Assembly: GCA_001643675.2 (NCBI GenBank)
Contig: LSRY02000027.1
Span: 1,178,001-1,242,000, forward strand
From: Monocercomonoides exilis PA203
Taxonomy: Eukaryota > Protista > Preaxostyla
Direction of reading: 5' to 3'
DNA: 64,000 nucleotides
In this document: in pieces, positions 3,107 to 35,350 of the stretch
Numbering within the stretch: the stretch's first letter is position 1
How the letters are laid out: every line of letters starts with the position of its first letter
Translations under genes and position numbers: made by a program
The notes under the pieces: model-generated
What the model saw: the letters and a program-made list of their open reading frames with translations, nothing else
Told to the model about the DNA's origin: nothing
Databases searched by the model: none

Positions 3107-3195
3107 AATTCGCAATACAACAAATCAACGAACGTATGGAGCAGGTTTGCTCCTCAATAATGAGTTTTGATCTTAAATTATGCGTAGTGTAAGAT
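3107..3195. repeat. Left ITR of DIRS element
   Basis: Left end gagcaggtttgctcctcaataatgag...ttaaattatgcgtagtgtaag aligns with the reverse complement of the right end, gacaggtttgctccgaaataatgag...ttaaatcatgggtggtttaag. It contains the small hairpin ggagca-ggtt-tgctcc. Confidence 0.8.
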
Positions 3196-3247
3196 TAAAC
3201 TTCGCAAACAATTTTATTTCTATTTCATACCTTTGTCCGCAGTGTAG

Positions 3248-5228
3248 ATGACACATGATACTGTAAGAATGCCAAATAGCGAAGGCGAGGGCAGAGGATT
3301 TGATCATATTCACAGGCTTTCAAGGGCAGAAAACATGATCGAAGAATTCACCAGAAGCCAAGTGTGGCCAAGGCAGTCCGGAGCTACGGGGATGCTGTCA
3401 ATGAAAAAAGATAAGAGGGAACGACTTAGGAGAAGAAGCAGATCGAGATCGAGCGAGTTGGAGTCGGATGCAGAGTTTGGCGATCTGATCGCGAAGCGGA
3501 AACAATGAAAGCGTGAGAGATGGCGGCGTTCAGTTAGCCGCACGAGGAGACGGGAATATGAAGAGGATAGAGAATGGGATTGCTGCAAGAGAAAGAAGGA
3601 ACAGAAGACTTCACAAGAATTTTTCCCAGGGAGTGGTTGACACCCCGGAGACAAGCGAGCGAGTTGAGGAAATTCATTGAGTTCTGTAAGGCGGGATCCT
3701 TACGAATGAATGAGGATAGATTAAATTCATTTATTCCGGAGGGCGAGAAGGAATTTTTCACGGGACACACGGATATAAGCTGGAACGCGCTAGCCAGAAC
3801 ATCCATCATAGCAAATGGGAGAAGAGATTCACTAGAAGCTAGCCGAGTGATTGAACTCCTCCAGCCTGCCCTAGAATCGGGCTTTGAAGCTGCAAAAGCG
3901 ATTGCATCACTAACGGTGAAGGAATAGGAGAAAGCGCACCTCATGGAAGAGGAGAAAGAGCGGCTGAGGGGTCTTTTCTGCTCATACGCCCTGACAGCAG
4001 ACTGTATCAGCCGGATCAATCTATTAAAAGTCAGACCCCAGTCAAGCTGGGAGAACGTAAAGGGTTTCCTTGAAGGGGGAACGTCCAATAACGTCACAGA
4101 GAGCCTGAGGAGGCTTGTGGAGAGCACCAGCTCTTTTTCGTCCAGAGGTGGATATTCCAATGTTCGGATCATCCCCCGTTTCCCCCACAACATTCGGCCT
4201 TATCTCAACCAGGAGTGGGTGCGCAAGAAGTTACAGCACGGGTAGGAATGCTCAGGTTTTCGCTTTCAGACAGCTCCAAAAGCATGGCTTCGATGGGAGC
4301 TTCACGAATTTCAAAGAAAGAAGGAGGTCAATACAAGTCCTTCCACAGCATGCCCCAGCACCAGCTGGGAGAGTGGCATCGATCACAGTTCCCATTCCCC
4401 AAGCTCCACCGAGGATACAGGGAGGATCAGCAACTGGAACAGCTACGTGATCGAGCCAACGGGCTTAGAAGAAGCAGAGAGAGAAGAGAGAGAAGCACTT
4501 TGCTGCAAGACGGAGATGGACAGAATGCTGTCGAATACCGAGAAAGTGACAATGCCAAGGTGTGTCCTATTCAATCGACAGATAGTTACAAGAACGGAAC
4601 CCGCAGAAGTTTGCGAGAACATCGAAGATGTACTGAGCCCGTTCGATTGAGAAAAGAGAATAAATCAAGGAATCTCGAGAGACTACGAGATGGGAACATG
4701 GAGAGAGAACACAGAAGGAGACTCCGTATATTCCAGCAGGACAAGACAGAAGAACGATCGGAAATCCGGGAAGGAGGAAGAGAAAAAAGTATTGAGAGCT
4801 TCTCGGACTGTCTTCGAGTCCCCAATTGGGAGTTTTCAGGAACAAAACTTGTGGAGAGCTATTGTAGATATTCTCGAAGAAGAAGAGAATACACAGACGC
4901 AACTTGGCCACAAGACGCCAGGAGTGAGGGAGAGTATAGTGATTGGACCGTTGAAGGAGCCTCTTCCTGGGAGACTAGTGAACAGGCTGAGCGAGTGGAA
5001 GAAGATTGGGGGAGACAAACTAGTGAGCCGTGGTATAAGAGCTCGATGGAAAAGTCCCCAATCCCCAATCTCATTCAAGGAGAGAAAACACAGACAAGAT
5101 TTTCGTGGGACGACGGAAATGATGAACAATTATTTATCCCTCTTGGAGGAGGAATTGAAGGAAGGAGTGGTGAAGCCCATACTGGAGTCGGAGGTGAAGT
5201 GGTTCAACACAACATTCATGGTGATTAA
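3248..5228 (+). pseudogene. DIRS ORF1 (gag-like), broken by stops and frameshifts
   Basis: Consecutive + strand ORFs 3248-3508, 3574-3927, 3943-4245 and 4215-5228 lie upstream of, and overlap, the RT frame, as in DIRS. Assignment is by position only. Confidence 0.55.
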
Positions 5229-6792
5229 GAAGAACGGAAAGTGGAGGAAGATTCTGGATTGCAGTGTGTTGAACGAGGAAGAACTGGGAAAATAGTTAAA
5301 GATGGATTCCCGGGAAACAGCGGTGGAACTCCTGGAGGAGAACGACTGGATGACTACTCTCGACATATCGAGTGCTTATCAACATGTCAAAGTGGACGAG
5401 CAATTCAGTCCCTATCTGTGCTTCAGCTTTCAAAGTCAATGCTACGCTAACGTAGGGATGTCCTTTGAAGCAAAGGATGCGCCCAGAGTATTCACGAAGA
5501 TAATGAGAAAAGCGGCGTCATATATCAGAGAAAAGTGGAGAGTGAAGCGAGTAATATGTATGGACGACACACTCCTCATGCACCCAGACAAGGAAGTTTT
5601 GAGATTGATCTCACAGGAGATAGCCCAGTTCCTGAGAGATCTGGGCTGGAATCTGTCGGAAGAGAAACTGAAATTGGAACCCACAAGGAGCGTGGAGTTT
5701 TTGGGATGGTTGTGGAACTCAGAGAAGATGGAAGTGACACTCCAAGAAAGGAAGAGAGTGCTGCTCCTGGAGGATGTGCGTACCTGGATAGCACTGGCAA
5801 AGAAGAGGAGTGGACTGAACACGAGAGACTTAGCAGCACTACTCGGGAGGCTGAACTTCGTGAGACTGCAACACCCACCAGCGAGTTTGTGGATGAAGCG
5901 CATGCAATACGTGCTGAGGCAGGCAATAGCCCGCGGAGGCTGGAATGGAGCGGTGATACCCAACCCAATGTTGTTGGGAGAGTTTACACATTGGAGGAGA
6001 ACACTGCTCGAGAACAGACCAAGGAGTCTGAAGAGAAGGAACAGACCAACAGAATTAGCAACGGATGAGTCAGAGCTGGGATGGGGTGCAGTGTTAACAG
6101 TTCCGATTCTGAGCAGAGAGGAGAAGATATATGCCCATGGAAGATGGACCCTCCAGGAGAGTGCGTTAGCGATGAACGAAAAAAAGTCCAGAGCAGTGTT
6201 GAGGACTATAGGAAGGAAAGGAGCATGGCTGCAACAACAGAAGATAGATCATATTCGTCTGAAGACAGACAATATGTCCACGAGATGGACGATACAGCAG
6301 AAGAGGGGAGTGCCATCGCTCATTCCAACACTGAGAGCATTAGAGAAGAAATTGAACAACCTGGACATTACGATACAAACAAAACACCTTCCGGGAGGAC
6401 AGAATACAGAAGCAGATGCACTCAGCCGGATGGCGAAAAAGCCGGACTATGCACTGAGGGGGAAGAAAGTCGCAGAGATATTGCAAATAGTCTCAGCGAG
6501 AACACTTGATTCAATTTCAAAACTGATTGCTCAGGTTCCCTGCGGAAGTACTTGGAGACTATCCTCTCAGAGAAGGAAGAGAGAGATAGAAACGCAAGAA
6601 AACGAGATAGTGACAGTCCACCCGTTCCTGAGAAATATTGGACGGAACCTGAAAGAGAAGATGAACGAATCTCAGAGGGAACTAACGATTCTGATTCTGC
6701 CAGCCTGGCGGGGGCAGACCTGGACCCCGCTTCTGCAGCCTGGGCATTTGATAAAGACGCTGGGGACCTTTCAGGAGTGCATGACACAGTGA
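4690..6792 (+). pseudogene. DIRS reverse transcriptase / RNase H / methyltransferase-like ORF
   Basis: RT motifs: FMVIKKNGKWRKILDCSVLN, LDISSAYQHV, MSFEAKDAPRVF, ICMDDTLL (degenerate YxDD), VEFLGWLW. RNase H: TDESELGWGA, TDNMST, HLPGGQNTEADALSR. C-terminal HPF...ILILPAWRGQTW is typical of the DIRS MT-like domain. In-frame TAG at 5293-5295. Confidence 0.9.
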
Positions 6793-6799
6793 GCGAAGA

Positions 6800-7830
6800 T
6801 GAGAAGGGAAGGCTGGAAATAACCCCCCGGAGAGGAAATAAGCGTAATTCTGGAGAGGAAAATATCCCAGGAATGGACATCTTCCTAACATTGTGAGAAC
6901 ACGTTTGAGCAAAGGACATAGCAGCAGCAATATTGAGAAATCAGAGGAGAGAAAAAGATACGTGGAGAGAGCTGCGAAGATTCAAGCAATTCCTTGATAG
7001 AGAGAGCATGGATGATACGGACACTCTCACAAACAAAGGTGCAAAATGGATTATGGCAGAGTTCACTGAAACACTTTCGAATACGAACTTCTCAAGTGGA
7101 GTGATTCATCAGACAGTTCACAAAGTTCTGGATTCTATTTCCCTTTTCAGAGAGACTAAGATGTATGTAAAAGATATTGATTCATTTCCTAAAAATTTAT
7201 GTTAGAGATAAGCCGAGGTGGGGCAAACAATATAAATCAACGCAGGAATTTACCATAAAAACAAAAGGGGGAAGACACCACATATAACTCAACAGACACA
7301 CAAGCACCACAGAGGAGAGCCTCTATCCTCACAGAAATTTTGTTACGTTTGAGCCAGCTGAGCTGGAGAGATTGAGAGGGGAGACAACGATGCTTAAAGA
7401 TAACTTTGTCCAGACACAAGTATGAGCCAAGATGTCGGGAGGGGTGAAGGTTAAGGTTATCATAAACAGACATCCAAACACACGTATTGATTCTGTTTTA
7501 GCGCTCCAACGTTGGATGGATTATACAAAGACAACTTTAAAAGACGAACATGTGTGGTTCGATATTAGTGAGAATCAACCTGCAAATTTGCAGAGAATCA
7601 AAGAAGAGTTAACAGCGATTCTGAGAGAGAACGGAATACCCGACTCATTCACCGCGTGCTCGATTTGACATGAAGTGATAACACACTTTGCAAGACAACA
7701 AGATGCAGATTGGAAGGCGATCAATGCTTATGCGAGATTGGCACCAAGTTCGAGAGTGGTGCAGGAATATAATACAGTTTTCCGATGCAAGACACAAAAT
7801 GGATCCTGGAGACAATCAGCGGCCCAGCAC
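6800..7830 (+). pseudogene. DIRS tyrosine recombinase (degenerate)
   Basis: FTACSI*HEVITHFARQQDADWKAINAYARLAPSSRVVQEY matches the YR box II layout (xSxR...GRW...Y), with the catalytic Arg mutated to TGA at 7666-7668. The ORF is split over 6933-7205, 7432-7668 and 7675 onward. Confidence 0.75.
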
Positions 7831-8365
7831 CTCGGATTGGAGAAGAAAACAAGCCTGATAAGAGTGGAGAAGCGAAGGAGGGAAGGCTCAAGATTGCAGA
7901 TAAAGATTGGAAAGATCGCACCGAGGAATTACAAAAAGCGGGATTTGAAGAAGGGAAGAAGCTTACGAGAAAGCGATCAAGAGGAAGAAAGAAGCTGCCG
8001 AATGGAGAAGTGAGAAGAGGTGAAATGGCTCAGTCACGAAGCTCAACACCCCGACAACCGAGTCGCCAGAAGATACCCTCCATTATACCCAGAAACATCA
8101 GTGAGCTGACTGGAGAGAAGGATCCAACTCCACTGAAGAAGAGAGGAAAAGATCGGAAGAGGCGTAGTGGAAGAAGAATTGGACAGATAGGTAATGACAC
8201 GGAAAATGCAGGGGCCAGGCCTCTGTCGCTTCAGAAATACACCAAGAGATGCAGGGTGAAGAGCAGGAGTGCAGCACCATCACACGTACGCTCTCAACTC
8301 ATCCGCCGCACTAGAGCGTGCTAGGAAGGGGGTTTTTGATCACACATACGGAAAGAAAAGGGATT

Positions 8366-8470
8366 TCGAGACTCATTATTGAGGAGCAAACCTGCTCCTT
8401 GCGTTTGTAGATTCTCTCCATTGCGAATTGATAAAAACGCAGCGAGACAAGTTTGCTCCGAGATAATACA
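8366..8470. repeat. DIRS internal complementary region (ICR)
   Basis: 8371-8398 is the exact reverse complement of ggagcaggtttgctcctcaataatgagt at the left end, and the match extends imperfectly to aattcgcaa at 3107. The second half (to ~8467) is the reverse complement of attatttcggagcaaacctgtctctctgcgtttataatt at the right end (~9083-9121). Confidence 0.9.
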
Positions 8471-9049
8471 AATGGAGATGGAGAGACTCAAAGAGGCTGG
8501 GTGCGTAAGAGAGAAACATATTAGGAAGAATATGAAGAGGAAAAGGGGGAGATAGCAGAGGAGATAGAAAAAGAATAACCGAACAGAAAGATCCAGCACG
8601 CCTAAACCTGTGTTGAGAAACAGGGAATGAATAAAAAGTATTTAGAAGGATCCTACTCCTTTTTTTGGTGTCGAACAAATGCAAGGAGAAGAATCAGACT
8701 GACCCACACAATGCGTGGTGGGTGGATTAGCTCTGCTGGATTAGCAGAAGAGCGGGAGGCCGAGCACATCACATGCAGTTTTCTTTTCCACGCCTCGTTA
8801 AAGCAAGAGTGGTTTTTCTTTCTGCTCCGTTTTGAGCATTCGCCTCTCCGAATCCCTGTACAGCCTGCAGGAGACAGCTCCGAGTGTCAACGTCCCCTAC
8901 CCTCTGGTCTTCAAGAACATGGAAAAAGGCGAAGTCTGTTGTGAAGTGAAGCGGACAATGCATTATTTTATTTCACAATTTTTTATGTTATTGTTTTGTT
9001 TTTATCTCGCCCCTTTTTTTCCACTTCATATTTGGGAGGGCGAAGTTCT

Positions 9050-9121
9050 CACTTAAACCACCCATGATTTAAATTATTGCTCATTATTTCGGAGCAAACC
9101 TGTCTCTCTGCGTTTATAATT
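9050..9121. repeat. Right ITR of DIRS element
   Basis: Inverted similarity to 3107-3195 and complementarity to the 3' half of the ICR. Confidence 0.8.
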
Positions 9122-10322
9122 AAATTTGTTTTCACAATAGAAATATTCAATAAAATGAATGAAATGATTGCAGAAAAGAAACTTTCGATGGAAAATGCAT
9201 TATTCTTGCTGAAACATATTGGGTATTTCATCGCATTGAAAAATATACTGATCGAAGGCTTTGAATATTCTTTGCTGAAAGCAAGATTTGAGAAGATAAT
9301 ATTTGAGGAATATGAAAAAGGAGATGGAATGGATGAAAATCGGCTGGTTGATCTTTTCGAATGTTTTTTGATATTATGTTTTAACTGTATTTTTGATGAG
9401 TCACTTTTAATCTGTGTGCCTTGTCTGCTGAATGTTGCGTTGAAGAAAGAAAAAGACGAGGAGACTCAAAAAGAAGTGGAAATGGCTCTTTTGGTGCTGA
9501 GTTGTCATGATGAATTTTATGTTTGAGCACTTTTTTTCTTTTTTGACGTTTCTGATTTTTATTTCAATTTTTTATTTGAAACAGCCAGAAGAAATGTATA
9601 TGAATGAAACAAAAGAAATCATTCAGTATCATCAAGAACATCACAATTTGACGCAACTTGCATATCAATCTGCTTGGAGGATTTTGATTATTCTATCGCT
9701 CAGCACAAATTACATTGTAGACGTTATTGCGGATGAGATGAATTTTGTGAGAGAGGCAAGAAGAGAACTGGAAGAATTGGCAAAGTGTGTTGATTGGAAG
9801 AGAGAAAAAGAAGAGAAAATAAAAGGAAAAGGGAGGAAAGAAGAACTTGTTTTGTTGAGATGGCTTTCTTCGATTTTCAGTTTGTTTCAAACGAATATAT
9901 CGACGAATGAAGAATTTGCTGGACTTATCAGCAGTCTTGTTCAGGTATTTAGGTCTGCGAAGGATGAATGCAGAGAAGCAAGCAACTGGTGCATTTATTT
10001 ATTTGAAGAAGTTGCAAAAAATAGATCTGTGGTGGTTGAAAACTTGCTGAAAGACAAGGCAACTGATGCTGTTTTGGAGGAGATTCAGCGGCCAACGTTG
10101 AACGAAAGAGTGGTATTTGAATGCTTGGAATTCTTCATCCATATTTCAAAGGAATTGAAAGAAAAAGAAGAAAAAGAAGAAGAAGAAGAAGCGAAAAGAA
10201 AGGCAATGATACTGGAGTTGTTTGAAAGACTGGAAGAAGAAGGATACGAAGATATCATCATAAGCATTCAAAAAAATATTAGTTACATTTTTAAAGATGA
10301 TGACGTATTTATTTATCTTTGA
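9122..10322 (+). pseudogene. Helical (ARM/HEAT-like?) multicopy family, copy 1, 5'-truncated at the DIRS end; exons 9122-9520 and 9585-10322
   Basis: Family motifs LLKHIGY, CVPCLL, QKEVEMALL.LS, HHNLTQLAYQSAW and LEEEGYEDII are shared with the copies at 40.7, 55.7 and 59.5 kb. GT-AG intron 9521-9584 is at the conserved position. Exon 1 and the first part of exon 2 are absent. Confidence 0.85.
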
Positions 10323-10545
10323 ATATTTTTGTTTATTTTGTGAATGCTTAAGGAAATGAAGTGCTGTGAATATCGTTGAACCGAAATTCAATTCTTATTT
10401 CTTTTTGTTTCATTTCATATGATGAAGTTTATTCTTTTGAGCGGTTTGTTTTCCTTTTTTGATGAAACAAAAAAAAATAAATACAATGATTTAAGCCAAC
10501 AGTTTTTTTTAGAAATAATATTTCAATTTTTTTACACTCAAATAA

Positions 10546-10547
<2 letters not shown>

Positions 10548-10599
<52 letters not shown>
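10548..10599 (+). repeat. Poly(A) run of 52 nt
   Basis: Uninterrupted A tract immediately after aataaat. Confidence 0.95.
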
Positions 10600-10601
<2 letters not shown>

Positions 10602-10999
10602 GAAAAGGTTTTCTTTTTTTGTGTTCAATTTCTCTTTATCCTCTAGAAAAGAAAATCCAAAGATAAAACACAAATCCAACTACAAAGAAAAACTTTAGAA
10701 GTGTTTTATTCTTCAAGTGCAAGTGCTGTCTGTGATTACCTTTTTTGTTTATTCACATTAATTTTTAATGACTTTCCATTTGAAAATGAATCAATAATTC
10801 AAAAACAGACGGCATAATGGAATTATATCGAAGTACTCAAAACTTTTATTTTTCTATTGAGACATATTTATTTGTGTATTCTTACAATCTTTATGTTATT
10901 TAAAATGCAAGAATATGGCAAGCATTTTTTTTAATGAAAAAATAAAAATTTGGGTGAAACTAACGATTTATTGGTTAGATCAAAAAAAATTCTGTGAAA

Positions 11000-11489
11000 A
11001 TGGCGTATCCTGAAGATAAAAAAGATCATAATTTTGAACTTTTGAAAACATTTACTGATGAAGAAAAGGCTTGGAAATTGTTTAATAGATTTGTTTTACA
11101 AGACAAACATCCTGAGTGTGCTATTCACCATAAGAGTTTGGCTTTATTGAATGAAAAAGGAACTTAAAGATATTGGATGTGCTTCAAATGTGACAAAAAA
11201 CGGACAGTTTTCAAAAATACGAGATTAGAAAACAACAAAATTGGCCTGGGCAAATTCTTGTTTATAGTTTTATTTTTATGGCAAGGTCTAATGCAAACTC
11301 AAATAAGCTCTATTATGGAAGTTGATCCAAAAATTGTGGGATATTGGAGTAGTGTTTTACGTTTTGAGTACATGAATATCATTAATCGAAACACTATCAT
11401 GATTGGTGGCGTTGGAAAAACAGTTGAAATCGACGAATGTATTTGGAGAAGAAGAAAGTATAAGAGAGGCTGAAGAAAAAAGCAGATAT
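11000..11489 (+). pseudogene. Merlin/IS1595 (ISXO2-like) transposase, 5' half
   Basis: N-terminal Cys cluster (CAIH...WMCFKC) followed by IGGVGKTVEIDECIWRRRKYKRG, the ISXO2 first-Asp motif. Frameshifts and a stop are present. Confidence 0.88.
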
Positions 11490-12172
11490 GGCACAATCTT
11501 TTTGAAAAGTCGGAAAACTTTAATGTCGAACCCACAAAAGATCACAAATTCGAAAGCTCAATTTATAGGGAAATTTTTATCTCCAATCATTCACAACATT
11601 TTCACAACATTATTCTCAAATGATTTTATGCATTAAAACAAATCACAAACATTTTCCATATTTAAATTTTGTAATGTTTCAGTGATCAATATGAACAATA
11701 ATCTTAAAAAGATTTGATAATAGAACAGAAACACTTCATTAATATTGAGAATGGATAAAGAAATTAGTTTTTCGTTAAGCTGTATGTATTAATATCTCAT
11801 TTAAATTCTTTGCAACCAGCCAAATTTTAAAGTTTGACAAAGCGATGAATGTTGTTTATTTAACAAACCAATCACGAAAATTTTTAATTGAATAATGTAA
11901 CATTCCTTTTCTTGTTGTTTTCAATTCATTTTTGGCTTTATTTGTTTTGAAATCAATATGCATTGTTATTATTAAGCGAAAACTGTGATTTGATGAATTT
12001 AATATGAAATAACGAAATGAAAAAGGAAAGAAAAATAAGAATTACAAATTTGGAAATACCTGTGGAATATTTCTACGCTCAAACAATTGTACCAATCATG
12101 GAAATTGCTTTTCTATTTGTGTGCGAATTTGTGTTCATTGTTTTATTGGAACCTCCAATCCACAGAAAATTT

Positions 12173-15100
12173 TTAATAAACAAGTAATCGAAAAGCATTC
12201 ATTTTCATCTTCTTCCTATTCCACTTTCTTTTCCTTTCCTCTTCCAATACACTTTCTGCAAACGAACCCACTGATGATACGAAACCAATGAACGTTAGCG
12301 TTACCGAAACATTCCTTAATAAACACGACCTTGATGACGATGAGCCTGCAAAAAATGATGATGGAGAAGTGCTAGTGAGGGAAAGCCTCAAATACTCACT
12401 CAATTTGCTTCACAAATTGTTCTTTTCCTCTATTTTTCTTTTTCTTTTTCTTTTTCTTTCTTTCACTACACCTTCGCTGCCCTCCACTTCACCACCGATG
12501 GTTGCCTCAATTTCTCCACCTTGCCACTCTCATCTTTCAATCCTCAAACTTCAACCTCTCTTCTTCTTTTGCTTCGCCTTCGCCTTCGCCTTCTCCTTCT
12601 CTTTTTCATTCATCATCATCATCTTCTTCTTCTTCATTGTCAGCTTCTTCTGATAATTCATCTCTCTTGTCTATATGCATTTGCGACAAATCCTATTCAC
12701 ACAAGGGACTTTCCAACAGGTAAAACGGTAGAATACTTTTCTCTTCTTTTGCAGTGAAAAATTGGAATCTTTATCCATTAGGCTACTTGTCTGCGATAAA
12801 TCATCACATATCAACAATCGTTGGTATCATCTTCAGCACAAAGCAGCAATCCAGCAGTTCAGATAGCCAACATCGACAGCCGCTCAGGTTCTCAAGGTCT
12901 TACACTGCGAACTGTTGCATATGACTCCACAGGCCATATACATATTGACTCTTCCACTTCCACCAACTTGGAAGAGCAGCAGCATCCGCAGTCGCTCCAA
13001 ACTTCACAAGACAACGGTGCATCTTTTGCAATCCAGGAGCAGAATGAATCATTTCATTCTGAAGTTTCTTACCAAAATCAGATGGCGTGCGCGCATCAGT
13101 CTGCTCCTCCTCTGCTATCAATTCCACTGTCAAATGAGTGATGAAATGAATTGGGGAAAGAATACTTTTGTGGAAGCGGAAGCGTATGTGGCGTTGGTGG
13201 CGACGAAGATCAAAGAGATGAAGCAGGCATTGTGGCTTTAAGAACACCGACTCTCATTCATTTGTATACGGAATCGCCGAATTAGCAGGCACATCCTGAA
13301 CAGGGAGAATGTTTGTGGAGGAAGGGAAAGCAGCAGCTGGAAGATGGGGGGAAGTGAAACCAAAGAGACTTCAGAAAGGCAGAGAGAAGTGATTGAATGG
13401 CTGGTTGAGATGATGGTTTGAGTTTGTTTGGAGAGGAAAAGAGTCAGATGATTTTGGGAGTGTTGAAGAAGAAGAGGAAGAAGAGGAAGAAGAGGAAGAA
13501 GAGGAAGAAGAAAAAATAGAAGGCTGAACAATAAAATACCCATGATGTGCGGAGGGATCAACAAGCGCATTCACATAGCGGTAGCCTTGTTTGTGCTGAT
13601 AAGTGTTCTCATGAAATTCAAACGGTGTAAATACAACAAGAGAATCGGAAAGAGGAGTAAAAGAAAGCTGAGGCTGTATCACAATGTCATTAATAGCAAC
13701 GCCAGCTCCACCTCCAGAAGAAGCAGCAGCAATATCCACATCTTCCATTGCTTCTTCGCTTCTTAACTGATTTGCAGGATTTTTGGCTTTTCGGCAGAGT
13801 GTGTGCTTTTATATTCATTCCCATTGTAATCTTCTCTGTAAGATTTATTGGATTTGTGGGTATTGGAGGGCGTGACATTTGATGGACCACGCGATGGATT
13901 CTGCACAACCACAAAACGAAGAGGATAGAGTGGGGTAAATGAGGAGTTGGCATCTGATAGAGGTTCTTTAGAAGAAGAAGAAGAGAAAGAGGAAAAAGCA
14001 GAAAAAGCAGAAGCAGAAAAGGCAGACAATGCAAACGGATGTTCTGAAGTCGAATGACTCAAGCGAATCGAATCTGAGAGAGGCACTTTCGAGCCACTCT
14101 ACTGATGCTGCAGTGCAAAATGCTCGTTTTCTTCGTCGTTCACTCTCTGTCTCCTGTGCTTCTTTAGCGTTCTCTGCCTTCTTAGCACACTTTGCTCTTC
14201 TTCTTCTGCCTCTCATCCGACTTCATTTCCCAAGTTGAGGATTATCTCGCTGTCATACAGAATTCCCATCTCATTCACTTCTCTCTCTACAAACACCAGC
14301 CCCGCTTTCTTCAACAGCCTCACTTGCTCATACTGCAGCTCCTCCTTCTCTCTTTCTTCTCTCCCTTCGCTCCTCTCTCTTCCCACTGTTCCTCCTCTTC
14401 CTCCTCCTCCGTTACCATCTCCTCCTTTGCTGATTCCTCTATCACTTCCTCCTTATCCATCTCCTCTCCTTCTCCCTCTGGTTTTGCATCAGGTTTCTCT
14501 CGCTCATCATCGTCGTGAACCCGCCGTCCGCACAAACAACCAGAATGTCCTCTTCTTTCCTCCTCCTCTTCTTCCTATCCTTCTCTGACGCTTCTGCATC
14601 TGCCTTTGTCTCTGCGTTGCCTTTCTTGTCGCTCCAATTTTCAACATCATGCAAACAGAATCCTCCTCTCTCGTCGTCTGCTTCCCCATCAACCTCTTCT
14701 TCTTCTTATTCCTCATTTACCTCGTCTTCTTCGTTGTATCTATCACAGGAGCTTGTCTCTTCCTCTGCTCTTAGCTTCATCAGCCTAAGAGACTCAATGC
14801 TTCCATTCAACAAACATTTTTCTGCTTTTTCAGCTTCATCAGCTCGTGAAAGCACCGCGACCTTCGTCTTTCTAACTCTTTGACCCTGGACGAAAAAGAG
14901 GAGAAGGTGAGTGGAGGTGACGTTGGTGTAGAAGACGATGCAGTGGGGATCAGGAGATGGATTGAAGGTGTGTTGAGGAGTGGGGAGAGGAGAAGCGAAA
15001 GGAGCAAGATGATGTGAACACATTATGTGGAAGCCGGTATCTGTGTGTTGCGGAGACAGAACCTGGACAGATGAGTTAGAAGGGGTGACATTTGGAGATT

Positions 15101-15909
15101 GGGAGCGAAATGGATTGGATGACGGTGGCGGTGGTGATGATGATGAGGATGAGAAGAAGAAGAAGAAGAAGTGGAAGAAGAATGAAAAAAATGAAAAAAA
15201 GAATTATTAGCAGATAAAATAGAAGAAGATAAAAGAGAAGATGATGAAGAAGATATCATTGATAAGAATGAAGCAGAAGGAGAAGAAATATGACTGGAGA
15301 AGGAAGAAGAAGAAAAAGAGGAGGTAGATGAAGAAGAAGAAAGCAAATGAAACTTCCTCGTCACCTTTTTTGACATTCTGCATTGTTTCCATAGACACTG
15401 CAATGATATATTCATCCAAATGCAAGACACAACTTGTAATTAACCAGTAACCTCCAATATACCACTCACGCAATTTAAATAATTTCATTACTAATTCCGC
15501 TCCATTCAGAGCGATAGCAGCGCCTTCTTCAAAGCAAAGCCTGGGTAAGCCTGTGGAATATCCAATGGAGTATTTTTTTCTCTACCGAATGATGGCGGAG
15601 ATATGCTGTTTGAGCTTTTCACATTTGAAGATGATGAGAATGTGCAGTGTTGCTTGAAATTCAACGAAGGAGCGAAAGATTGCTGTAGGAAAAGAATTCC
15701 AAGGAATTCTAGCTAATCACAGCGAGCGATACGCTAACCAAAGCCGTGGCGAAGAAAAGAAGGACACTAACAAAAATTTTCTGATTCAAACAAATCTTCT
15801 GAGTTCTACAGCTCTGCAAGCTCAGCGCACAGTGGCAGATGAGCCTCTTCTCATCTTCTTTTCCGTGCAATATCACATTCAACTTTTCCATATCCGAATA
15901 GATTGCCAT
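12173..15909 (-). pseudogene. Degraded multi-exon host-like gene, possibly a membrane protein with hydrophobic segments near both ends
   Basis: A series of - strand ORF pieces: IFVSVLLFFATALVSVSLAVI near the N-end, WYIGGYWLITSCVLHLDEYIIAV, FTPFEFHENTYQHKQGYRYVNALVDP, and VTLTFIGFVSSVGSFA near the C-end. These are interleaved with Ser/Glu tracts, stops and frameshifts. Confidence 0.45.
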
Positions 15910-16374
15910 CTTCTATTTATTATGTGTTTCATAAAGAAACATTGACAACGAGTTTCTTTGTTTAGAATAAAACCTTCTTTTATGCGTCCAGCCTTCAAAC
16001 TGTTTTTTTTTTTTTGTCAATCGAGTAGAAACAAAGAATAATGAATGTGTAATAACCATTTGTCCTTAAATTATTGTTGTTTATAAAAAAAACTGCAAAA
16101 AAAAATGCAACTAACATATCTGAACTTGAATCAAAGGATTGGTTTTTGCAAATATGAAAAATGTTTGTTGGTTAAAATTTTTCAACAAATATAATGAAAT
16201 AAGTGTTCACTGCGACAGAAAACATTCAAACAGAAACATAATGCATTTTAAAATATGCGTAATTTATGTATCCATAAGAAATTAACAAAATAAACCATTG
16301 TTGCATTGTGGATAAGAGAAAATCGGAAAAGTTCATTCAAAATATTTCATTTTGGTGTTTATTTTCATGAATGC

Positions 16375-16530
16375 AATTTTGGTTCTTCGAAAACTTATGA
16401 AAAGTGAAATTAATGTTGATATTGTAATTTGCACTTCAATGGAACATAGTTGTTAAATGTTATATTATTTATTATTTGAAAAAAAGCAAATGTCAGACGA
16501 TCTCTGATTTTTCAAAAAGAATTTCTGACC
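16375..16530. repeat. Internal copy of the right end of the 9.6-kb element
   Basis: gatctctgatttttcaaaaaga at 16499-16520 is identical to 21095-21116. Weaker similarity continues upstream (tatattatt..., gc[a/t]attttggtt). Confidence 0.7.
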
Positions 16531-17074
16531 CGTTTCTTTTATTCTGTATGCATGATGCCCATCTTGAGAATCATTCTTACACACGGTTTGCTTTTGGAAT
16601 TATGACAATTCTGAAAAAAAGCTTTCAAAAGTATTGTTATTTATCCAAGATCAATTTTTAATTGTTTCTGTAGGGACTAGACGAATGGGAAATAACAAGA
16701 TAATCTAACAATAATGTGGCGTTCATGTGCAAATTTGATTATCCATGAACGAGTTTCAAAAATGATTTGTTTTGATAAACTTTTTCCTATCCGCAGAGAG
16801 ATTAATGACGGAATGAAGAGTATTTTATATATTTCAAGTTACTCACTCTGAATATAAAAGAAATGCTCTCGTTTTTCTAGGATTGTGCCTTCAGCAACAT
16901 GTTTCACTTTTCTAATTCTTTATTTGTATTTCTATTCTTTTTATTGAAAAAAAAATATTATCATAGTTGGAAACAGGAAAACTCTTTTGAAAATGGAAGG
17001 TGATTAAAGAAAAGAAATGCGGAACTACTAGCTGTACATGCGCCTGCCAAAGTATTCACTGTTCAAATCGGATC

Positions 17075-18486
17075 CTATTTTGAATCAATTATTATGAATG
17101 TGTTCCCAACATGTTCAATAAATTCATTCCGACTATACTTAGGGAATCCCTCATTTTCTTCTTCTTTCTCACATTCTTCTTTCACAGAATCTACTGTTAT
17201 TTCTCTGGAAAAGTCGCAGGCTTCCGAGTGCTCGGATTCAAAGCTTTCACCTGAGTGACATCGAAACCACAAACAGGCTGAATATCTAAGGAGACAACAC
17301 ATTGGGATGAAATCGAGCACGGAGCAATGGAGCATAAAATCCAGCGGAACAGATGTGGCTTGTGCGACACCAGGCCAACTTTTTGATATGATGAAACAAA
17401 AAAACATTTTCGTGTGGAAGAACCCAGGTTGGGGCAGTTCGAATACAAGAAATACTTTCAAAGGAGAAGAAAGTTTCGATCGAGGGATAAAGGAGAAGCC
17501 ATAATGCTTAGGGTTTGTTTGCAATTGATGAGATTGACAGGATACTGAACTTTGGATTCGTTCCAAACGTGGAGATGCTAATTTAATTCGCCTTTCGATT
17601 GGTTCGGGATGCTTCTAGATGTGGCAATAAAGACGGAGAAAGTGAGGATTGATCAGTACAGAGCGTATTTTTGGTGTTCAGTTCCAAAGCAAAGCTTATC
17701 TTCACATACTCACCAGCCGTCGCGATTTCAAATAAGCTTTTGGACTTCTTTTTCTTTATTATTACATGGCTCAACGACCACGTCCATCAACCTTTCCTCG
17801 GCGAGTTTGAACCTTCAGTCATTTTGTTCTTTGTCATACTGCTGTTGTATGTCAACCACATGCGACGCAATTTCTATCTCTGAAGCCCAATTCTGTTTAT
17901 GATGATCATGTTGGTTCATATATGTTTGCGATTTCATCTGGTGTGAAGTGCAGTGTTATGGCAACCTCGTGTGAGGAGTTCGGTGGAATTATTGGAGAGT
18001 GTTCAAGGACTTTTGAGAAATCTCCAAATTGTTCGTCATCTTTTCTGACAAGAAGGCCTAGGCTAACGTTCTTTGTGTGTGCAGTTGAAGTCTTTCCGCT
18101 GTCATTAATCGCATGGCTATATCACCAAGGCTGATGGGGAACAGACACTGAAGTCGTTATAAATGTGTTCCATTAAGGTATTTTTACTACCGATTTTTAC
18201 AACGTAATACATTGATTATCCGCATATAGAACCGATTATTGATATGTTTGCCCTGACGAAAACAGAGACTAACGTTTATTGTTCTGGAAGAACATATTGA
18301 TGCATACGAGGACGTATATGCGTTGCATTGCATTTCAAAACATAAGAGTTCTCCCTGAGATGATAGAAAGGAAGAGCTGATTTCGTTACGATCACGTTTC
18401 AGCCACTTCAGTAGTGCAGATGATATGAGCAGTTTGAAATGATGGTTCAGAACAGATTGTGGCTGTTTCATGTTAACTGATTTCAT
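17075..18486 (-). pseudogene. Degraded host-like gene fragment of unknown function
   Basis: Higher-GC, codon-like block with broken - strand ORFs (17075-17566, 17583-17774, 18187-18486). No recognisable motif. Confidence 0.3.
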
Positions 18487-19869
18487 TCTTCATATATGTT
18501 GCTTGTCTGCAAGCAAAAAACTTGAGGAAGAAGAAACAGATGATTTAAACAGAGCTGAATGAAGGAGAGAAGTTTTGTGAGGAAGAAGATGATGAGGATT
18601 CAAAAGACGAAAAAAAAGAAGAGGAAGGAGGAAAATTATTGAAAAAGAAGCTGAAAGAGGAAGAAAGAAACATAAAGAGAAAAAGGAAAGAAAATATGAT
18701 GAAGAAGCAGTTATTTACGGAATAAAGTTAAAAGAATGGTTGGAGAAGAAAGTTTGGAAGAATGTGTTGATTATGTTGCTTCAAACAAAATCACAAAAAA
18801 TTGGAAACAAAAAGAAACTCAAAACGTTTGCGTTTATCACATGTGCCATTGAGATAAAGACTTTGTTCTTTGTAGTGAATGAGCACATTCGTTCAGTGAG
18901 TCAAAGCTTCATATCACTGCTTCCATCACAGCAAGGCAGAAGAAACTTTTACGGATCTTGTTATTTGGGTATGCATTGTTCAGCGTTCGTGCTTTCGTAA
19001 AGTAAAATTCAATGGACACATTTGTTGAGAATCTGACATGTTCAGCGTTTTATTTCCAACAACTGTTACAGAGCAACCGAAGGTTGTCGCCAGAGAAGTG
19101 GTCTCTGTTGTGAACAGAGAACGAAACAGAAATGAAGGAAGCATTGGAAGAGGCAAAGAAAGAAGCATTAGAAAAGGACGGAGCTTTGGAAGTCGAAGTG
19201 AATGCAGGAGAAGAAAAAGAGGTGGACGAGAAGGAAGAAGTTTTGATTTTGGATGTGGAAACGGAGGATGTGTATCGAATGGAGGCTTTAACGAAAGAAA
19301 GAGTGGAGAGTGCGGATGAAAATGAAATAAAATATATCTAATTTTTTTGAAAATGATTCTGTGTCATTTTGATTTAGCACTTTATCAACTTGATCATGCA
19401 TATTTTGCATTAATCATATATTTTCAATTTCACCAATATTAAAAAACATATTTTTTCGAAGTTTACAATAATAACAAGAATTAGCTTTATTAAAAAATAG
19501 AGGCTTTGTTTAAAAAAAAAACATAGACATAAACATAATTATGTATTGCTCAAAAAAATTGGACATTCTTTGCTAAAAATAAAATATAGTAAGTTCCGCG
19601 CAACATACGAACTCTTTAAACTCGATATCTGATAAAAGATGAAATGCGAAAAAATTCAGAACCAAACTGTGTTGAGAGAAACTCTCTCGAAAAAATAAAT
19701 GAAAATATTGAGGTAGATTTGAAAACAAAAATACTTTCTTAACAAAGAACAATTATCACCAGCATTCAATCCACTTTTCACACTTTGAACTTCCATTGAT
19801 GAACGAAGTTTCCAAAGTTAGGCTTTGCTTGTCATTCTGTGTTTTTTCCTTTAGGTATATTGAATCCTA

Positions 19870-20580
19870 TATCTTCACTATCTCTGCTCTTTCCCAAAAA
19901 TGTCCAAAAAACAAATGCTGCAGCTCGCTCAGCATCAACCACTCTCACGCTTCTGACGGTGTGTGCGCTTCAACAGACACAAATTTTGTCATTATCCCAA
20001 CTGCACAAGATTGGCCTCTCCTGATTCACAATCTTCTGCCCAGCCACAACTGCCTCATATTCTTTAATGGGATCTGGAGCGTCAGGCACTCCCACAGCAT
20101 CATCCAAATTGAGAATGCCCCCTTCTCCTTTGTCGCTCCCATATTCTTGTTCTCCATCAACTCTGGCGCCTTCCACCGCAAACACTCAAACTGATTGTCT
20201 GCATCCTCAAATGCCGATGAAGGCAACTTTGCGTCTCTCCACCTCTTGTTGATCGATGAGCAATCAGAGGAAGATGTGACAATGGTGCAGGTGGACGATG
20301 CAGATGAGGTATCTGAGTCTGATGAGAAGTCCGAGTGGAGGGCAATGCAGATCACCATGTGCTCTGAAAACAGCACAATGTGCGGACAAAGAGATGATTG
20401 ATTGGAGTTTGCTTTCCATTTCGCAAAATCAATGAAGCGCGAGATTGTAAACCTTGAACAGGATCAGGGAAGCTGTTTGTTCTATTTTCCGCAAAGCGCC
20501 AATCTCCATCTCCTTCTTCTCATTCCTTTTATAAATCAGCATGAATAGCATAACTATTTGATCCAAAACATACATTTTCC
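19870..20580 (-). pseudogene. Fragment of the receptor-pseudokinase family (C-terminal domain only)
   Basis: LFSEHMVICIALHSD...CLRWKAPELM...FSIWMMLWECLTLQIP and YEAVVAGQKIVNQERP are closely similar to the C-terminus of the 27598-35350 protein. Frameshifted and 5'-truncated. Confidence 0.9.
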
Positions 20581-21123
20581 TATGTTGGAAATTGTGTGTA
20601 ACTTTTCAAAAGATTATAAAAAAGACATAAAAGAATGATTAATTTGTTATTTTCATTTGTTAAAAAATGAATGTAAAAAAATAAATAACTTAAAATAATA
20701 ATGATAAATAATAGAACATACACGACAAATATAATTTATACACAATCGATTACTCATTTCTGATTCACGCTCCATTTTCAATCAAGTCAATAATTATTCA
20801 AATTGTTGTTCATTATTAACGAATAATGAATAGCATTAATCACCAATAAAAGTGTTGTGAATAGATGCTTGTTAAATACACAATGAAAAAAACAAATTCT
20901 TCTCATATCAATGAAAATATGAATTGTTTTTGAATTAACAATTTCCCTTTAAAATTTATTTTGCTAAAAGCTATTTTGGTTTGTGGAAAAAAACAAAAAA
21001 CGATAAATGTATTTTGCTTATGTTGAATATAAAATTAGTGCATTGTCGTTTTTGGATATATTATTATAATTTTCATTAAAAACAATAACGGGAAGATCTC
21101 TGATTTTTCAAAAAGATTATGCC

Positions 21124-21680
21124 ATATGGATATTTGGGGGAATTGAAAGAAATGAAGATAAGAAAAATACAAAAAGAAGATTTGTTTTCATTGTTCCAAA
21201 CAGAAGTTCCGAAACACTTGTTCCTCTTTTAAAATTTCATATCCATCCAGGAACAACGATAATGAGATATGAATGGTGTGAATCCAGCAGATTGAAGGAT
21301 CATGGCTTCATTCATCAAACAGTGAATCATTCAAAAAATTTTGTGGATCCAATTACACATGGATGTGCAAATGCCGTTGAAAAAACGTGATCGCATCTGA
21401 GATATTTTTTCAAAGACATGGCATTAGAGAGAAATATATTGGAGACTATCTTTCTTTTTGAATGGTTAAAAAAACTTTGAAAGTAACTTTTATTGATATT
21501 GTGGGATATATTGTCCATGGAAGAGAAAATGAGAGAGAAATTATTGAAGAAGAAGAAGAAATCGAAAATGATGTTCCTGATATAGATGATATAGATGATA
21601 TTTCTGTTCCAGATGATGACAATACTTCAAGTGATGAGATTTCTGATGGTGCTAATGCATCAAATTGGAGCGACGATTAA
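21124..21680 (+). pseudogene. Merlin/IS1595 (ISXO2-like) transposase, 3' half
   Basis: My translation gives WIFGGIER...VPNRSSETLVPLLKFHIHPGTTIMRYEW...HGFIHQTVNHSKNFVDPITHGCANAVEKT*, the ISXO2 core, followed by an acidic tail ending at 21680. Confidence 0.9.
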
Positions 21681-33500: not shown

Positions 33501-35350
33501 TTGAAAAATACCCTTCTCTTCGTCGAAACATCATTTGCTCGGGTCCTTCCTCACTGACCATTTCAAGCTTGAAAGGAGGAGATGGGGTTAAAGATAATTC
33601 TTCTCTTTGGATTTTGAATGATGGATGCACACTTGGAGGGATAGCAGGAGAAAGGTCATCTCCTTTCTTTATTCCAAAATTGGAAGATGTTTCAGTGAAT
33701 GAAAATGGCAGAGATATTGTTTTGAAATTCAAGGGATCTCTTTTTGTTCCATGTGACTTGTCATTTAGACTTGTGTATAAAACAGGAGACGTGGAGTTGG
33801 TTGAGACATATCAGTTTGAGGAAGACAGTTTCATATCAGAAACTGAGGTGATTGGAAGAGTTCCATCAGAAAATATTTCAACGATTGGGGATGAGACGGA
33901 GGTATCTGTGATGATTTTGTTTGGAAAGCAATTGGCTTCGACTTCTCCACAGATTCTGAAGAATGCAAGTGAAGCAAAGACAAATGGAGATGAAAGGGTT
34001 GTTGAAGGAGGAAAAGAAGGGAAATCTTATTGGATATTGATAGTGATAATTATGGCAGTTATTCTTTTGATTGTTCTCATTGCACTTGTGATATTCGTAT
34101 CCAGATGGAGATATTCAAAAGAAGAAGCTAAAAAATACAAGGAGATTGTTAATGATAATATCAGAAAAGATCCAAAGGCGTTTGAGATGGTGACAATGGA
34201 GATGTCGCCTGAGGAGCAGTGGAGGAAGGCAGAGAGAGAGGCAGAGAAGAAGAACGATGAGAGGATGAAGAAGAGAATATTTGACACGAATATGGAACAC
34301 TCGGATTCTTCAGAGCATCTGCTGTCTGAGAGTGGCTCCACTGAATACATTCTGGGGAGAGACTCAGACAACATTCCCGATTGGGCGTTGGAGAAAGTTG
34401 AGGAAGAGGAAATAAGAAAGCAGACTCCATCGCCTTCTATTTCATCCACTTCAACCACAGATACTTCAGACACAGAATCCACTTTTGTTCGAGGGGAGGA
34501 TCTGTGCCCAACAACCTCATCCATGTCAAACTTGGTGGATGCAATGGCCTGCTCATCTCCTCATGAGAAACTGATTGTGGATCTGAGGGATTCGCTGTTC
34601 ATGTTGTTGCATGGAAGGAATGAAAAGAAGGAAATGCAGATTGGCACATTGAAAGAAAGAGAACATACAGCTGCCCAGATCCTGTTTTGGGTGGCAAATC
34701 TCGCTCTCCATTCGTTTGATGAAATGGAAAACCCTCTTCAATCTCTTTCCAATCTGAGTCCGCACATTGTGTTGTTCTCAGAACACATGGTTATCTGCAT
34801 TGTCATGCACTCAGACCTTTTATCAGATGATTCAGACTCGTCTTCCATCTCTTCATCAACTGTTGTGACATCTGCCAGCGATGATGACGATGATGAAGAC
34901 TCTCTGCCTTCATCTGCATTTGAAGACGATGATTATTACAAAAAAGAGTGCATGAGGTGGAAGGCACCAGAACTGTTGATCAACAAGAAGATGAGAGCAA
35001 CAAAGGAGTCAGTTGCATTCTCGATCGGGATGATGCTGTGGGAGTGCTTGACGCTCCAGATCCCGTTTGGCGATTATGAGGCAGAGGTGGCAGGACAGAA
35101 GATTGTGAATGGAGAAAGACCGAACATGGAGATAATCAGTGTATCTCGAATGAAGGGAATGGTTGAAAAAGCGATGAGCATGAACGCAGAGCATCGCCAC
35201 TCGTTGGCACAGATCAAGCGGGAGTTTGTGGAATTGTTTCCGCAAAGTGCAATGGTATTCACAATGACAGATGCGATCTGTTTGGTGGAAAGAAGTGAGA
35301 GAATTGAATCTGCAAACGAAAGAGAATCTGGAGATGTATTTAATTTGTGA
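27598..35350 (+). CDS. Large type-I membrane receptor-like protein: beta-helix/Pmp-like ectodomain, TM, degenerate tyrosine-kinase-like C-lobe; join(27598..27691,27744..35350), ~2566 aa
   Basis: Exon 1 MRMHLCILVCLILGKTFEA is signal-peptide-like, and a 52-nt GT-AG intron joins it in frame to the long ORF. There are GGA(I/L) repeats, four CG-x4/5-PC-led modules, a TM YWILIVIIMAVILLIVLIALVIFV (~34028-34099), and RWKAPELL, FSIGMMLWECLTLQIPF and GERP motifs. Confidence 0.9.

Follow-up and report, generated by a model that had tools for sequence, protein, structure and literature searches.

A probable Pack-type Sola2 element carrying host-gene fragments in the metamonad Monocercomonoides exilis

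Capture of gene fragments by Pack-type elements is well known in superfamilies of terminal inverted repeat (TIR) transposons other than Sola2 (PMC8277862). Plant Pack-MULEs and animal Pack-TIRs are non-autonomous TIR elements flanked by the target site duplication (TSD) typical of their superfamily, their interiors consist of fragments from one or several unlinked host genes, and they have been amplified by transposition, with fragments that are mostly decayed or chimeric (PMC8277862). These elements belong to Mutator, CACTA, hAT or Tc/Mariner, and the word "Sola" is absent from the text of that paper (PMC8277862). Sola2 transposons with passengers have been described in dictyostelids as the chimeric Sola2-Fanzor families DFa-1/2/3 and PPa-1/4/5, which have 4-bp AT-rich AWWT TSDs and TIRs of 12-22 bp, share one end region while the rest of the members is completely different, include transposase-deleted derivatives and are normally 10-13 kb in size (Bao and Jurka 2013, PMC3627910). 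A 4-bp TSD of the form AWWT is a stated hallmark of Sola1 and Sola2 (PMC3627910, PMC3845634), and the Sola1 MITEs of insects, which are short and without gene content, have AWWT or AWDT TSDs (PMC3845634). In the genome of Monocercomonoides exilis, approximately 35% of the sequence is counted as "unclassified repeat", and a large share of this overlaps with genes for tyrosine kinases (PMC8767320).

The DNA analysed here, referred to as the window, is a 64,000-nucleotide stretch of the M. exilis genome, and positions 11490-21123 of it form a 9.6-kb TIR element. This segment is very probably a non-autonomous Sola2 cut-and-paste element with a mosaic cargo that was built stepwise. Judged from its sequence, it is of the Pack type: it encodes no transposase, carries host-gene fragments and has transposed since their capture. 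It is like Pack-MULEs, Pack-TIRs and the dictyostelid Sola2 families in the features listed above. Unlike the former, it belongs to Sola2 and resides in a metamonad protist, its fragments are also borne by transposase-encoding relatives, and it bears a large cargo of at least 5.2 kb that was apparently assembled in steps. The dictyostelid passengers are Fanzor (TnpB-like) genes, whereas those in M. exilis are host gene fragments, and the TIRs in M. exilis are longer (31-35 bp, with conserved ends of about 55-90 bp). What is new is therefore Pack-type carriage of gene fragments in the Sola2 superfamily and in a metamonad; the behaviour itself is known from other transposon groups. A preliminary description of this locus had known of no account of such a system, which is too broad in view of the Fanzor chimeras (PMC3627910) and of Pack-type elements in other TIR superfamilies (PMC8277862), and it is the carriage of host fragments by Sola2 that extends them.

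The inverted arms at 11486-11520 and 21093-21127 are 35 nt long and 86% complementary. Within them, inverted-repeat comparison places the 31-nt TIRs proper, with mismatches at 5 of the 31 positions, at 11490-11520 on the plus strand (GGCACAATCTTTTTGAAAAGTCGG...) and at 21093-21123 on the minus strand (reverse complement GGCATAATCTTTTTGAAAAATCAG...). A 19-mer TIR core occurs once in each TIR and at no other site within the window. The 4-bp TSD copies, both ATAT, lie at 11486-11489 and 21124-21127, as established from the reading of the flanks and from empty sites. At the left TIR the outermost ~55-59 bp are common to every subfamily of the element's family, and on the right side a subterminal region (20936-21092, plus strand) is kept family-wide in the alignment of copies. 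Alignment with the right end also reveals a degenerate second right end inside the element (16380-16530, plus strand), comprising a 22-nt core, GATCTCTGATTTTTCAAAAAGA, and about 100 bp resembling the right subterminal region. This internal end is without the terminal ..TTATGCC, and it is kept at an equal relative position across all subfamilies.

The insertion interrupts a Merlin (IS1595-like) transposase gene, which lies outside the element and is its target. The left half of this gene (11177-11485, plus strand) was recognised by sequence reading, and the right half (21128-21389, plus strand) by a domain search in which the flank 21124-21389 matched DDE_Tnp_IS1595 (3.6e-9). The flanks translate as ..RRKYKRG*RKKQI on the left and WIFGGIER on the right; the gene was an already decayed target, an old Merlin copy. 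Excision in silico of the element with one ATAT restores CAG ATA TGG ATA TTT, and at least eight uninterrupted Merlin paralogues (on C11, C15, C17, C40, C62, C1, C27 and C30) are exact empty sites. In these eight, the left-flank and right-flank matches overlap by exactly 4 bp, which fixes the length of the TSD at 4 bp. Merlin was also considered as the mobilising superfamily, given ends that begin with GGCA and a Merlin gene as target. It was rejected on the length of the TSD, which is 8 bp (or 8-9 bp) in Merlin elements and 4 bp here; the IS1595-like sequence is an interrupted target only and confers no Merlin membership. The preliminary description had reported 31-bp TIRs with five mismatches and a duplicated target, and had held that the element moved as one unit, splitting the transposase between RKYKRG..KQI and WIFGGIER; both claims are borne out, the latter by the uninterrupted Merlin copies for which it had proposed a search.

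The ends recur genome-wide, a point on which the preliminary description had made its reading depend. At least 17 copies with paired ends were found, the element included, ranging from 7.4 to 21.3 kb; the long copies read end to end were C17 and C20. Perfect 4-bp TSDs flank 13 of the 15 pairs checked (ATAT nine times, and AAAT, AAGT, AGCT and AGGT), giving the family form A-N-N-T in which ATAT predominates. Seven copies constitute subfamily A and at least ten others lie beyond it, and fragments of the cargo are found among these copies, which occupy different loci and are each flanked by a TSD of their own. The stretch 11545-12437 is specific to the seven subfamily-A copies, and a genome search found no homologue of it outside this subfamily. 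The window copy is 88-93% identical to its closest relatives, which together with its TIR mismatches marks it as an old copy, and its sequence bears no sign of present mobility. Sola2 elements of this genome frequently adjoin one another at ATAT, head-to-tail neighbours being common. MITEs of about 240 bp with related ends also occur in this genome and behave like the Sola1 MITEs of insects.

Several copies that share the ends of the window element (C34, C66, C17, C20, C24, C1 and C35) contain a transposase gene about 320 bp inside the left TIR, with 45-53% identity to an intact 854/887-aa ORF at C32 that lies about 350 bp inside a related TIR and is flanked by ATAT. The 19-mer core and the left and right end types are common to the window element and to the transposase-encoding copies C17, C20, C34 and C66. 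The C32/C34-type transposase (854-887 aa) contains no Pfam domain at all, and thus no USP domain; Sola transposases have no Pfam model. A first search for protein homologues returned two unnamed matches, and an exhaustive search found PPL_04538 of Heterostelium album (library E 3.7e-19; pairwise 5e-27), whose residues (P0087) are identical word for word to "Sola2_PPa-1" in Additional file 3 of PMC3627910. Residues D113, D197 and D240 and an HGK motif are invariant across 20 homologues. Since the transposase family of the same-ended relatives includes Sola2_PPa-1, the superfamily is assigned to Sola2 by sequence comparison with this single published reference. The published PPa-4 end strings were not found in the Heterostelium locus of the PPL_04538 homologue, and inverted-repeat detection there was swamped by AT-rich repeats. 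The family TIR (GG..N5..TCTTTTTGAAAAGTCGG) also resembles, as judged by eye, the TIR of the insect Sola1 MITEs (GGACCGTTTATTTTGAAAGTGG...; PMC3845634), although the transposase evidence in M. exilis points to Sola2.

Candidate autonomous relatives, which the preliminary description had suggested looking for, are accordingly present in the form of genes predicted to encode a Sola2 DDD transposase, with same-ended partners that are imperfect. C34, a best candidate for an autonomous partner, has two open frames of 385 and 496 aa separated by about 75 bp that are AT-rich and contain stops, a gap that could be an intron or a lesion, and the transposase copies of C17 and C20 are broken. In public records, these Sola2 transposons are annotated merely as uncharacterized or hypothetical proteins.

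Approximately 54% of the interior (5.2 of 9.6 kb) was mapped to intact host genes, with at least four unlinked parents, and approximately 46% is without an identified parent. The first fragment, F1 (12438-13240, plus strand), is a decayed piece or pieces of a large Ser-rich host ORF with 71-77% nucleotide and 50% amino acid identity and stops. Its parent (C69:842300-846700) is of low complexity and open for at least 1466 aa, and F1, which is confined to subfamily A, joins two segments that stand 2.6 kb apart in it. F2 (13270-15194, minus strand) is a decayed piece of about 1.9 kb, antisense in the element and 72-74% identical in nucleotides to a large, low-complexity Q/S/E-rich host ORF (C36:1411200-1415990) open for at least 1597 aa; it occurs in subfamily A, is shortened in the C20 copy and is missing from the C17 copy. 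F3 (17028-18916, plus strand) is a decayed piece, corresponding to aa 42-698, of an 855-aa DEAD/Helicase_C/GUCT RNA helicase (C1:1783300-1785865, minus strand), with 67% nucleotide and about 46% amino acid identity and at least 13 in-frame stops as well as frameshifts. It occurs in every subfamily and is largely deleted in six copies of 7.5 kb. F4 (20013-20605, minus strand), also found in every subfamily, derives from the kinase C-lobe of the receptor tyrosine-kinase family and is 71.6% identical in nucleotides to the C-terminus of a 2571-aa ORF in the window (27635-35350). Both F3 and F4 are also present in the transposase-bearing relatives. The host-like nature of the cargo had been recognised from the sequence earlier, and mapping it to parents, as had been advised, led to C69, C36, C1 and members of the kinase family (e.g. 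C12). The kinase-like end of the receptor family seen at 19.9-20.6 kb is F4, and the "unknown fragments" at 17-19.3 kb are fragments indeed, now named as a piece of a decayed DEAD-box helicase gene. The supposed "membrane-protein-like gene" at 12.2-15.9 kb has to be replaced by two oppositely oriented pieces of two different low-complexity ORFs.

As F3 and F4 are found in all subfamilies and F1 and F2 in sublineages only, capture appears to have been stepwise and old, in the lineage before the window copy. No young pair of parent and fragment and no capture by the window copy itself was found; the fragments retain 67-77% identity with their parents and recur in other copies. The earlier view of a gene-capturing Pack-type element thus holds for the transposase-less mosaic of host pieces but not for capture by this copy, the interior being common to at least 16 others. 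In the proposed sequence of events, the helicase and kinase pieces would have entered first, ahead of the subfamily split, followed by the piece of the C36 ORF and last by that of the C69 ORF. The likeliest route of entry would be template switching during repair of an excision gap, a gap-filling or FoSTeST type of model as proposed for Pack-TIRs, at breakpoints now too diverged to reveal any microhomology. Modules would then have been swapped among family copies through recombination or conversion. Insertion of the window copy is attributed to a Sola2 DDD transposase supplied in trans, which would recognise the GGCA...TCTTTTTGAAAA(G/A)TC ends and make a 4-bp staggered cut at A-N-N-T, with preference for ATAT, here in the old Merlin copy.

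For the right module, it is possible, if rather unlikely, that helicase and kinase pieces came in by end bypass or composite formation, in which the right end of an ancestral element decayed into the internal end, a second right end farther downstream was used and flanking DNA was thereby carried along with no template switching. End bypass is a recognised model (PMC8277862), head-to-tail neighbours joined at ATAT are common, and the internal right end with its ~100 bp of subterminal likeness lies just upstream of these pieces in every subfamily. However, in the module, pieces from two unlinked genes lie oppositely oriented, in place of one contiguous host region, and no left end adjoins the internal right end. 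This alternative touches the origin of one module only and is compatible with a stepwise-built Sola2 element.

A transposase inside the element was sought in several ways. The intact family transposase as tblastn query gave no match inside it, and a profile HMM of 20 homologues, run with --max against the six-frame ORFs of at least 20 aa, gave none even at E<=10, whereas the broken copies C17 and C20, as positive controls, scored 1e-36 to 1e-59. A Pfam search of 10 interior ORFs found no domain; it is uninformative, given the decay of the fragments and the lack of a Pfam model for Sola transposases. Comparison of the element's ORFs with divergent copies by tblastn gave similarity in all frames, which reflects likeness at the DNA level and is useless for locating coding regions. 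Elsewhere in the window, a 1237-aa ORF (51123-54836) was examined as a transposase candidate but proved to be a Ser-rich low-complexity protein. It is very improbable that the element is a decayed autonomous transposon, its transposase eroded past recognition and its apparent cargo old element sequence. Such a reading could draw on the relatives that encode a transposase near the left end and on the 46% of the interior without identified origin, but the profile that detects broken copies is silent here, and pieces with 71-77% identity to two intact host ORFs fill the region expected to hold the transposase. The preliminary description had likewise found no transposase inside, and no remnant of one has come to light.

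That the segment represents two separate elements or a 9.6-kb segmental duplication, never transposed as a whole, is hardly credible. The degenerate internal right end and the frequent abutting of Sola2 elements at ATAT could be taken in its favour, but eight Merlin paralogues are uninterrupted at precisely this site, where the flank matches overlap by 4 bp, and both ends recur with a collinear interior at no fewer than 16 other loci, which differ in their flanks and have perfect TSDs of their own. Moreover, the internal end is without the terminal GCC and keeps a constant relative place in all subfamilies, and among the copies read none ends there with its own TSD; both TIRs belong to one element. 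Equally far-fetched is the reverse direction, exaptation of transposon segments by the host ORFs, for although similarity by itself carries no direction and unclassified repeats overlap with the kinase family throughout the genome (PMC8767320), each host ORF is a long open frame present in a single copy (the 855-aa DEAD/Helicase_C/GUCT helicase and the ORFs of at least 1466 and 1597 aa), the versions in the element are partial, rearranged and stop-ridden, and the origin of a conserved housekeeping-type helicase core from a transposon pseudogene is implausible.

One stretch of the Sola2 element's cargo, and only one, is comparatively young. Within F4, a 376-bp tract (20013-20387, minus strand) has 90.4% identity with an intact kinase gene of the host on C12 (L059) and 88.8% with a paralogue on C25 (L063), while the sequence on either side of the tract matches the C20 element copy at 92-94% identity. 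This pattern points to later conversion or re-capture, by which the tract would have been overwritten from a host kinase gene. A much more speculative and doubtful extension is that element-borne kinase pieces and functional receptor tyrosine-kinase genes exchange sequence through ectopic gene conversion, with the passengers of Sola2 (and Merlin) forming a mobile archive of pseudogene segments, scattered over the genome, that would help to diversify the largest receptor family of this protist, in a logic comparable to the pseudogene archives of antigenic-variation systems. The exchange that bears on this is a single tract, in the direction from host to element.

For the expanded gene families of M. 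exilis, which the preliminary description had hoped to help explain, the contribution of such elements would be a small part at most, with about 20 element-borne kinase pieces against about 960 kinase-like loci on a first look. The element represents one concrete source of the unclassified repeats, namely Sola2 transposons, by which fragments of kinase, helicase and other genes are carried and multiplied. The family allows successive acquisitions to be placed in order, and it gives a first indication that passenger fragments and live genes exchange sequence. Among the gene models annotated in M. exilis as "kinase-like" or "helicase-like", many are likely to be transposon passengers.

The element at window positions 11490-21123 lies inside a Merlin transposase gene and is bounded by the arms of a terminal inverted repeat (TIR) at 11486-11520 and 21093-21127 (35 nt, 86% complementary). 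The 31-bp TIRs with 5 mismatches and the duplicated target reported in the preliminary description are real: the two arms mismatch at 5 of the 31 nt of the TIR proper, and ATAT stands beside each end. The left end is GGCACAATCTTTTTGAAAAGTCGG.. and the right end, as reverse complement, GGCATAATCTTTTTGAAAAATCAG..; the ends of the family take the form GGCA..TCTTTTTGAAAA. Excising the element with one ATAT in silico restores the open Merlin frame, joining ..KQI to WIFGGIER, and the right flank matches DDE_Tnp_IS1595 (3.6e-9). When 300 bp from each flank were searched against the whole genome, eight paralogous Merlin copies (94-85% identical) were found in which left- and right-flank matches overlap by exactly 4 bases, which sets the duplication length at 4 bp. 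These uninterrupted paralogues are the empty sites of the element, which transposed as a unit with a 4-bp duplication, as had been claimed for it. Another Merlin copy of the same family (C69:1142203-1167485; C-numbers denote contigs) has flank matches about 25 kb apart, the right one beginning 33 bp late, as if a second, very large insertion had gone in at this site or close to it. Upstream of the Merlin gene, the ORF at window 5302-6789, whose domains are reverse transcriptase and RNase H, is part of an LTR-type retroelement.

The TIRs were checked against the M. exilis PA203 ONT assembly (82,301,135 bases, 101 contigs; PMC8767320), in which the window is C22:1178001-1242000 and each end matches about 20 further places. 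There are 30 perfect matches to a 19-mer core, and they form at least 17 pairs spaced 7.4-21.3 kb apart. Perfect 4-bp duplications flank 13 of the 15 pairs with readable flanks (ATAT nine times; AAAT, AAGT, AGCT and AGGT), and every one of them is A-N-N-T. Left ends define at least three subfamilies, and all right ends are related to one another. Six copies of 7.4-8.0 kb (subfamily A) match window 11490-16952 at 80-92% identity, a copy on C91 matches window 16462-18819 at about 74%, and over the right 2 kb every copy matches at 70-73%. Two long copies, on C17 and C20, were read whole; the right 7.3 kb of the 21,274-bp C20 copy is collinear with window 13970-21123 at 88-93%. The copies are mosaics of modules, probably exchanged between them.

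The core pattern with up to 2 mismatches has 473 genomic matches, against about 20 for a reversed control. Many are MITE-like pairs of about 240 bp with ends GGGTYATTCTTTTTGAAAAGTC.., and where elements are alike over no more than the terminal ~90 bp, their interiors are unrelated. Sola2-type elements from different families also abut end to end, sharing one ATAT between ..GCC and GGG.. ends, at fetched loci L046:490-505 (C91), L013:1555-1570 (C24), L018:1555-1570 (C2) and L039:1685-1700 (C17). Insertion seems to regenerate a preferred target, CC-ATAT-GG, giving ATAT-jointed arrays.

The cargo, described earlier as host-like, could be mapped to parental genes. Four decayed pieces of host origin (F1-F4), common to multiple copies, make up 5.2 of the 9.6 kb; parents are assigned for these and not for the remaining ~46% of the interior. 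The parent of F1 (12438-13240, plus strand) is a C69 ORF at least 1466 aa long, to which F1 is 71-77% identical in nucleotides and, with stops, 50% in amino acids; two segments 2.6 kb apart in that ORF adjoin in the element. The parent of F2 (13270-15194, minus strand) is a C36 ORF at least 1597 aa long (72-74% nt). F3 (17028-18916, plus strand) spans aa 42-698 of an 855-aa open helicase gene on C1 (DEAD, Helicase_C, GUCT), at 67% nt and ~46% aa with at least 13 stops. In the searches, the parents of F1, F2 and F3 were single loci. F4 (20013-20605, minus strand) is the C-lobe of a kinase of the receptor tyrosine-kinase family; it is 71.6% identical in nucleotides to the end of a 2571-aa ORF in the window and 73-75% to many paralogues. 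F1 is found in subfamily A only, and F2 in subfamily A and the window element, truncated in C20 and absent from C17; F3 and F4 are in all subfamilies. From this distribution, F3 and F4 were probably acquired before the subfamilies split, followed by F2 and then F1. Within F3, ~130 bp (18579-18710) have about 20 dispersed genomic matches at 72-77%; this stretch may be a short repeat or else a region of conserved helicase motifs. The 2571-aa open frame (27635-35350), in which Pfam recognises nothing but a kinase C-lobe (aa 2436-2530), is of the giant receptor-kinase type that supplies passenger pieces. Two adjoining ORFs at 49890-54836 (398 and 1237 aa), extremely Ser/Glu/Lys-rich and with no Pfam match, are of the same low-complexity type as the F1 and F2 parents.

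Part of F4 appears younger. An intact kinase gene on C12 matches window 20013-20387 at 90.4% identity, and a paralogue on C25 at 88.8%. The window copy and the C20 element are 92-94% identical on either side of this tract and only 48-84% within it, and the C12 gene is 70% identical to the C20 element, no closer than other kinases. Because the likeness to C20 drops only inside the tract and the C12 gene is not especially close to C20, the source of the tract was probably a C12-like host gene, from which the window lineage received it by conversion or re-capture. An open receptor-kinase ORF of the C12/C25 subfamily (at least 657 aa; C25:515300-517273, locus L064) lies 1.5 kb left of a subfamily-A copy carrying a kinase piece (C25:518774-526352).

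No transposase was found inside the element, in agreement with the preliminary description. Searched by tblastn with the transposase of its relatives, neither it nor the eight other copies first read whole gave a match. An unfiltered profile HMM (20-sequence alignment; six-frame ORFs of at least 20 aa) found nothing in the window element, not even with the cutoff relaxed to E<=10; the same profile scored 1e-36 to 1e-59 on the broken C17 and C20 copies. There are candidates for an autonomous copy with the same TIRs: relatives with the same ends encode a Sola2 transposase, but the C17 gene has stops, that of C20 is split and that of C34 lies in two frames. The catalytic region is still open in C34 and C66, in frames of 496 aa; in C34 it follows a 385-aa N-terminal ORF and about 75 bp of AT-rich sequence with stops, which may be an intron or a lesion. 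In the 21.3-kb C20 copy (C20:1279946-1301219) the transposase gene is split by a 9.3-kb insertion at element positions 3116-12414, which holds a further kinase piece and a further helicase piece, the latter better preserved (55-64% aa).

In subfamily C (C34, C66, C17, C20, C24) the transposase ORF begins about 320 bp inside the left TIR. Other TIR families share its N-terminal domain, and through that domain an intact 854-aa ORF (887 aa stop to stop) was reached on C32; it lies about 350 bp inside a TIR GGGTATTTTTTTTTGAAAAGTCAC.. that has ATAT in front of it. This ORF has no Pfam match, as expected since Sola transposases have no Pfam model. An exhaustive HMMER search returned 723 homologues, among them PPL_04538 of Heterostelium album (Polysphondylium pallidum; pairwise E 5e-27, 30% identity over the core), three strings of which recur unchanged within the entry 'Sola2_PPa-1' in Additional file 3 of Bao & Jurka 2013 (PMC3627910). 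D113, D197, D240 and an HGK motif are invariant in a 20-homologue alignment, and AT-rich AWWT 4-bp duplications are a hallmark of Sola1 and Sola2 (PMC3627910, PMC3845634). Homology to Sola2_PPa-1, the invariant residues and the AWWT-type duplications therefore point to Sola2 as the superfamily of the window element, in a comparison whose one reference transposase was from Sola2, not Sola1 or Sola3. Candidate loci for Sola2-type transposases number more than 400 in the genome, about 100 of them scored, most with uninterrupted frames of 1000-1400 aa and 37-40% identity to the C32 protein (e.g. C41:687625-688476, C23:276276-277127, C46:653642-654496). Homologues such as M. exilis MONOS_18616 and Blattamonas BLNAU_8195 carry the label uncharacterized or hypothetical in public records.

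Elements of the Mutator, CACTA, hAT and Tc/Mariner groups are known as Pack-type carriers, and the animal Pack-TIR survey makes no mention of Sola (PMC8277862). Sola2 elements with Fanzor genes have had their interiors swapped for those genes (PMC3627910), whereas the window element holds pieces of host genes. The M. exilis genome paper notes unclassified repeats overlapping kinases and nothing further on this (PMC8767320), and no paper was found on such gene-piece-carrying transposons in Monocercomonoides.

A degenerate right end inside the element (16380-16530; a 22-nt core plus ~100 bp that resemble the subterminal region, the terminal ..TTATGCC replaced) bears on how the cargo was acquired. 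It is an old family feature, as it occupies the same relative place in all subfamilies, always with F3 behind it, and it hints at an origin of the right module in either end bypass or aberrant gap repair, the latter copying the end twice. Template switching is ranked first as the capture route and end bypass second: a second right end in every subfamily favours bypass, but it has no left end next to it, and the module holds pieces from two genes that are unlinked, these pieces being oppositely oriented. On the template-switching route, host pieces would be captured during double-strand-break repair, following published models (PMC8277862). The window element was probably mobilised in trans, and modules probably passed between copies of the family.
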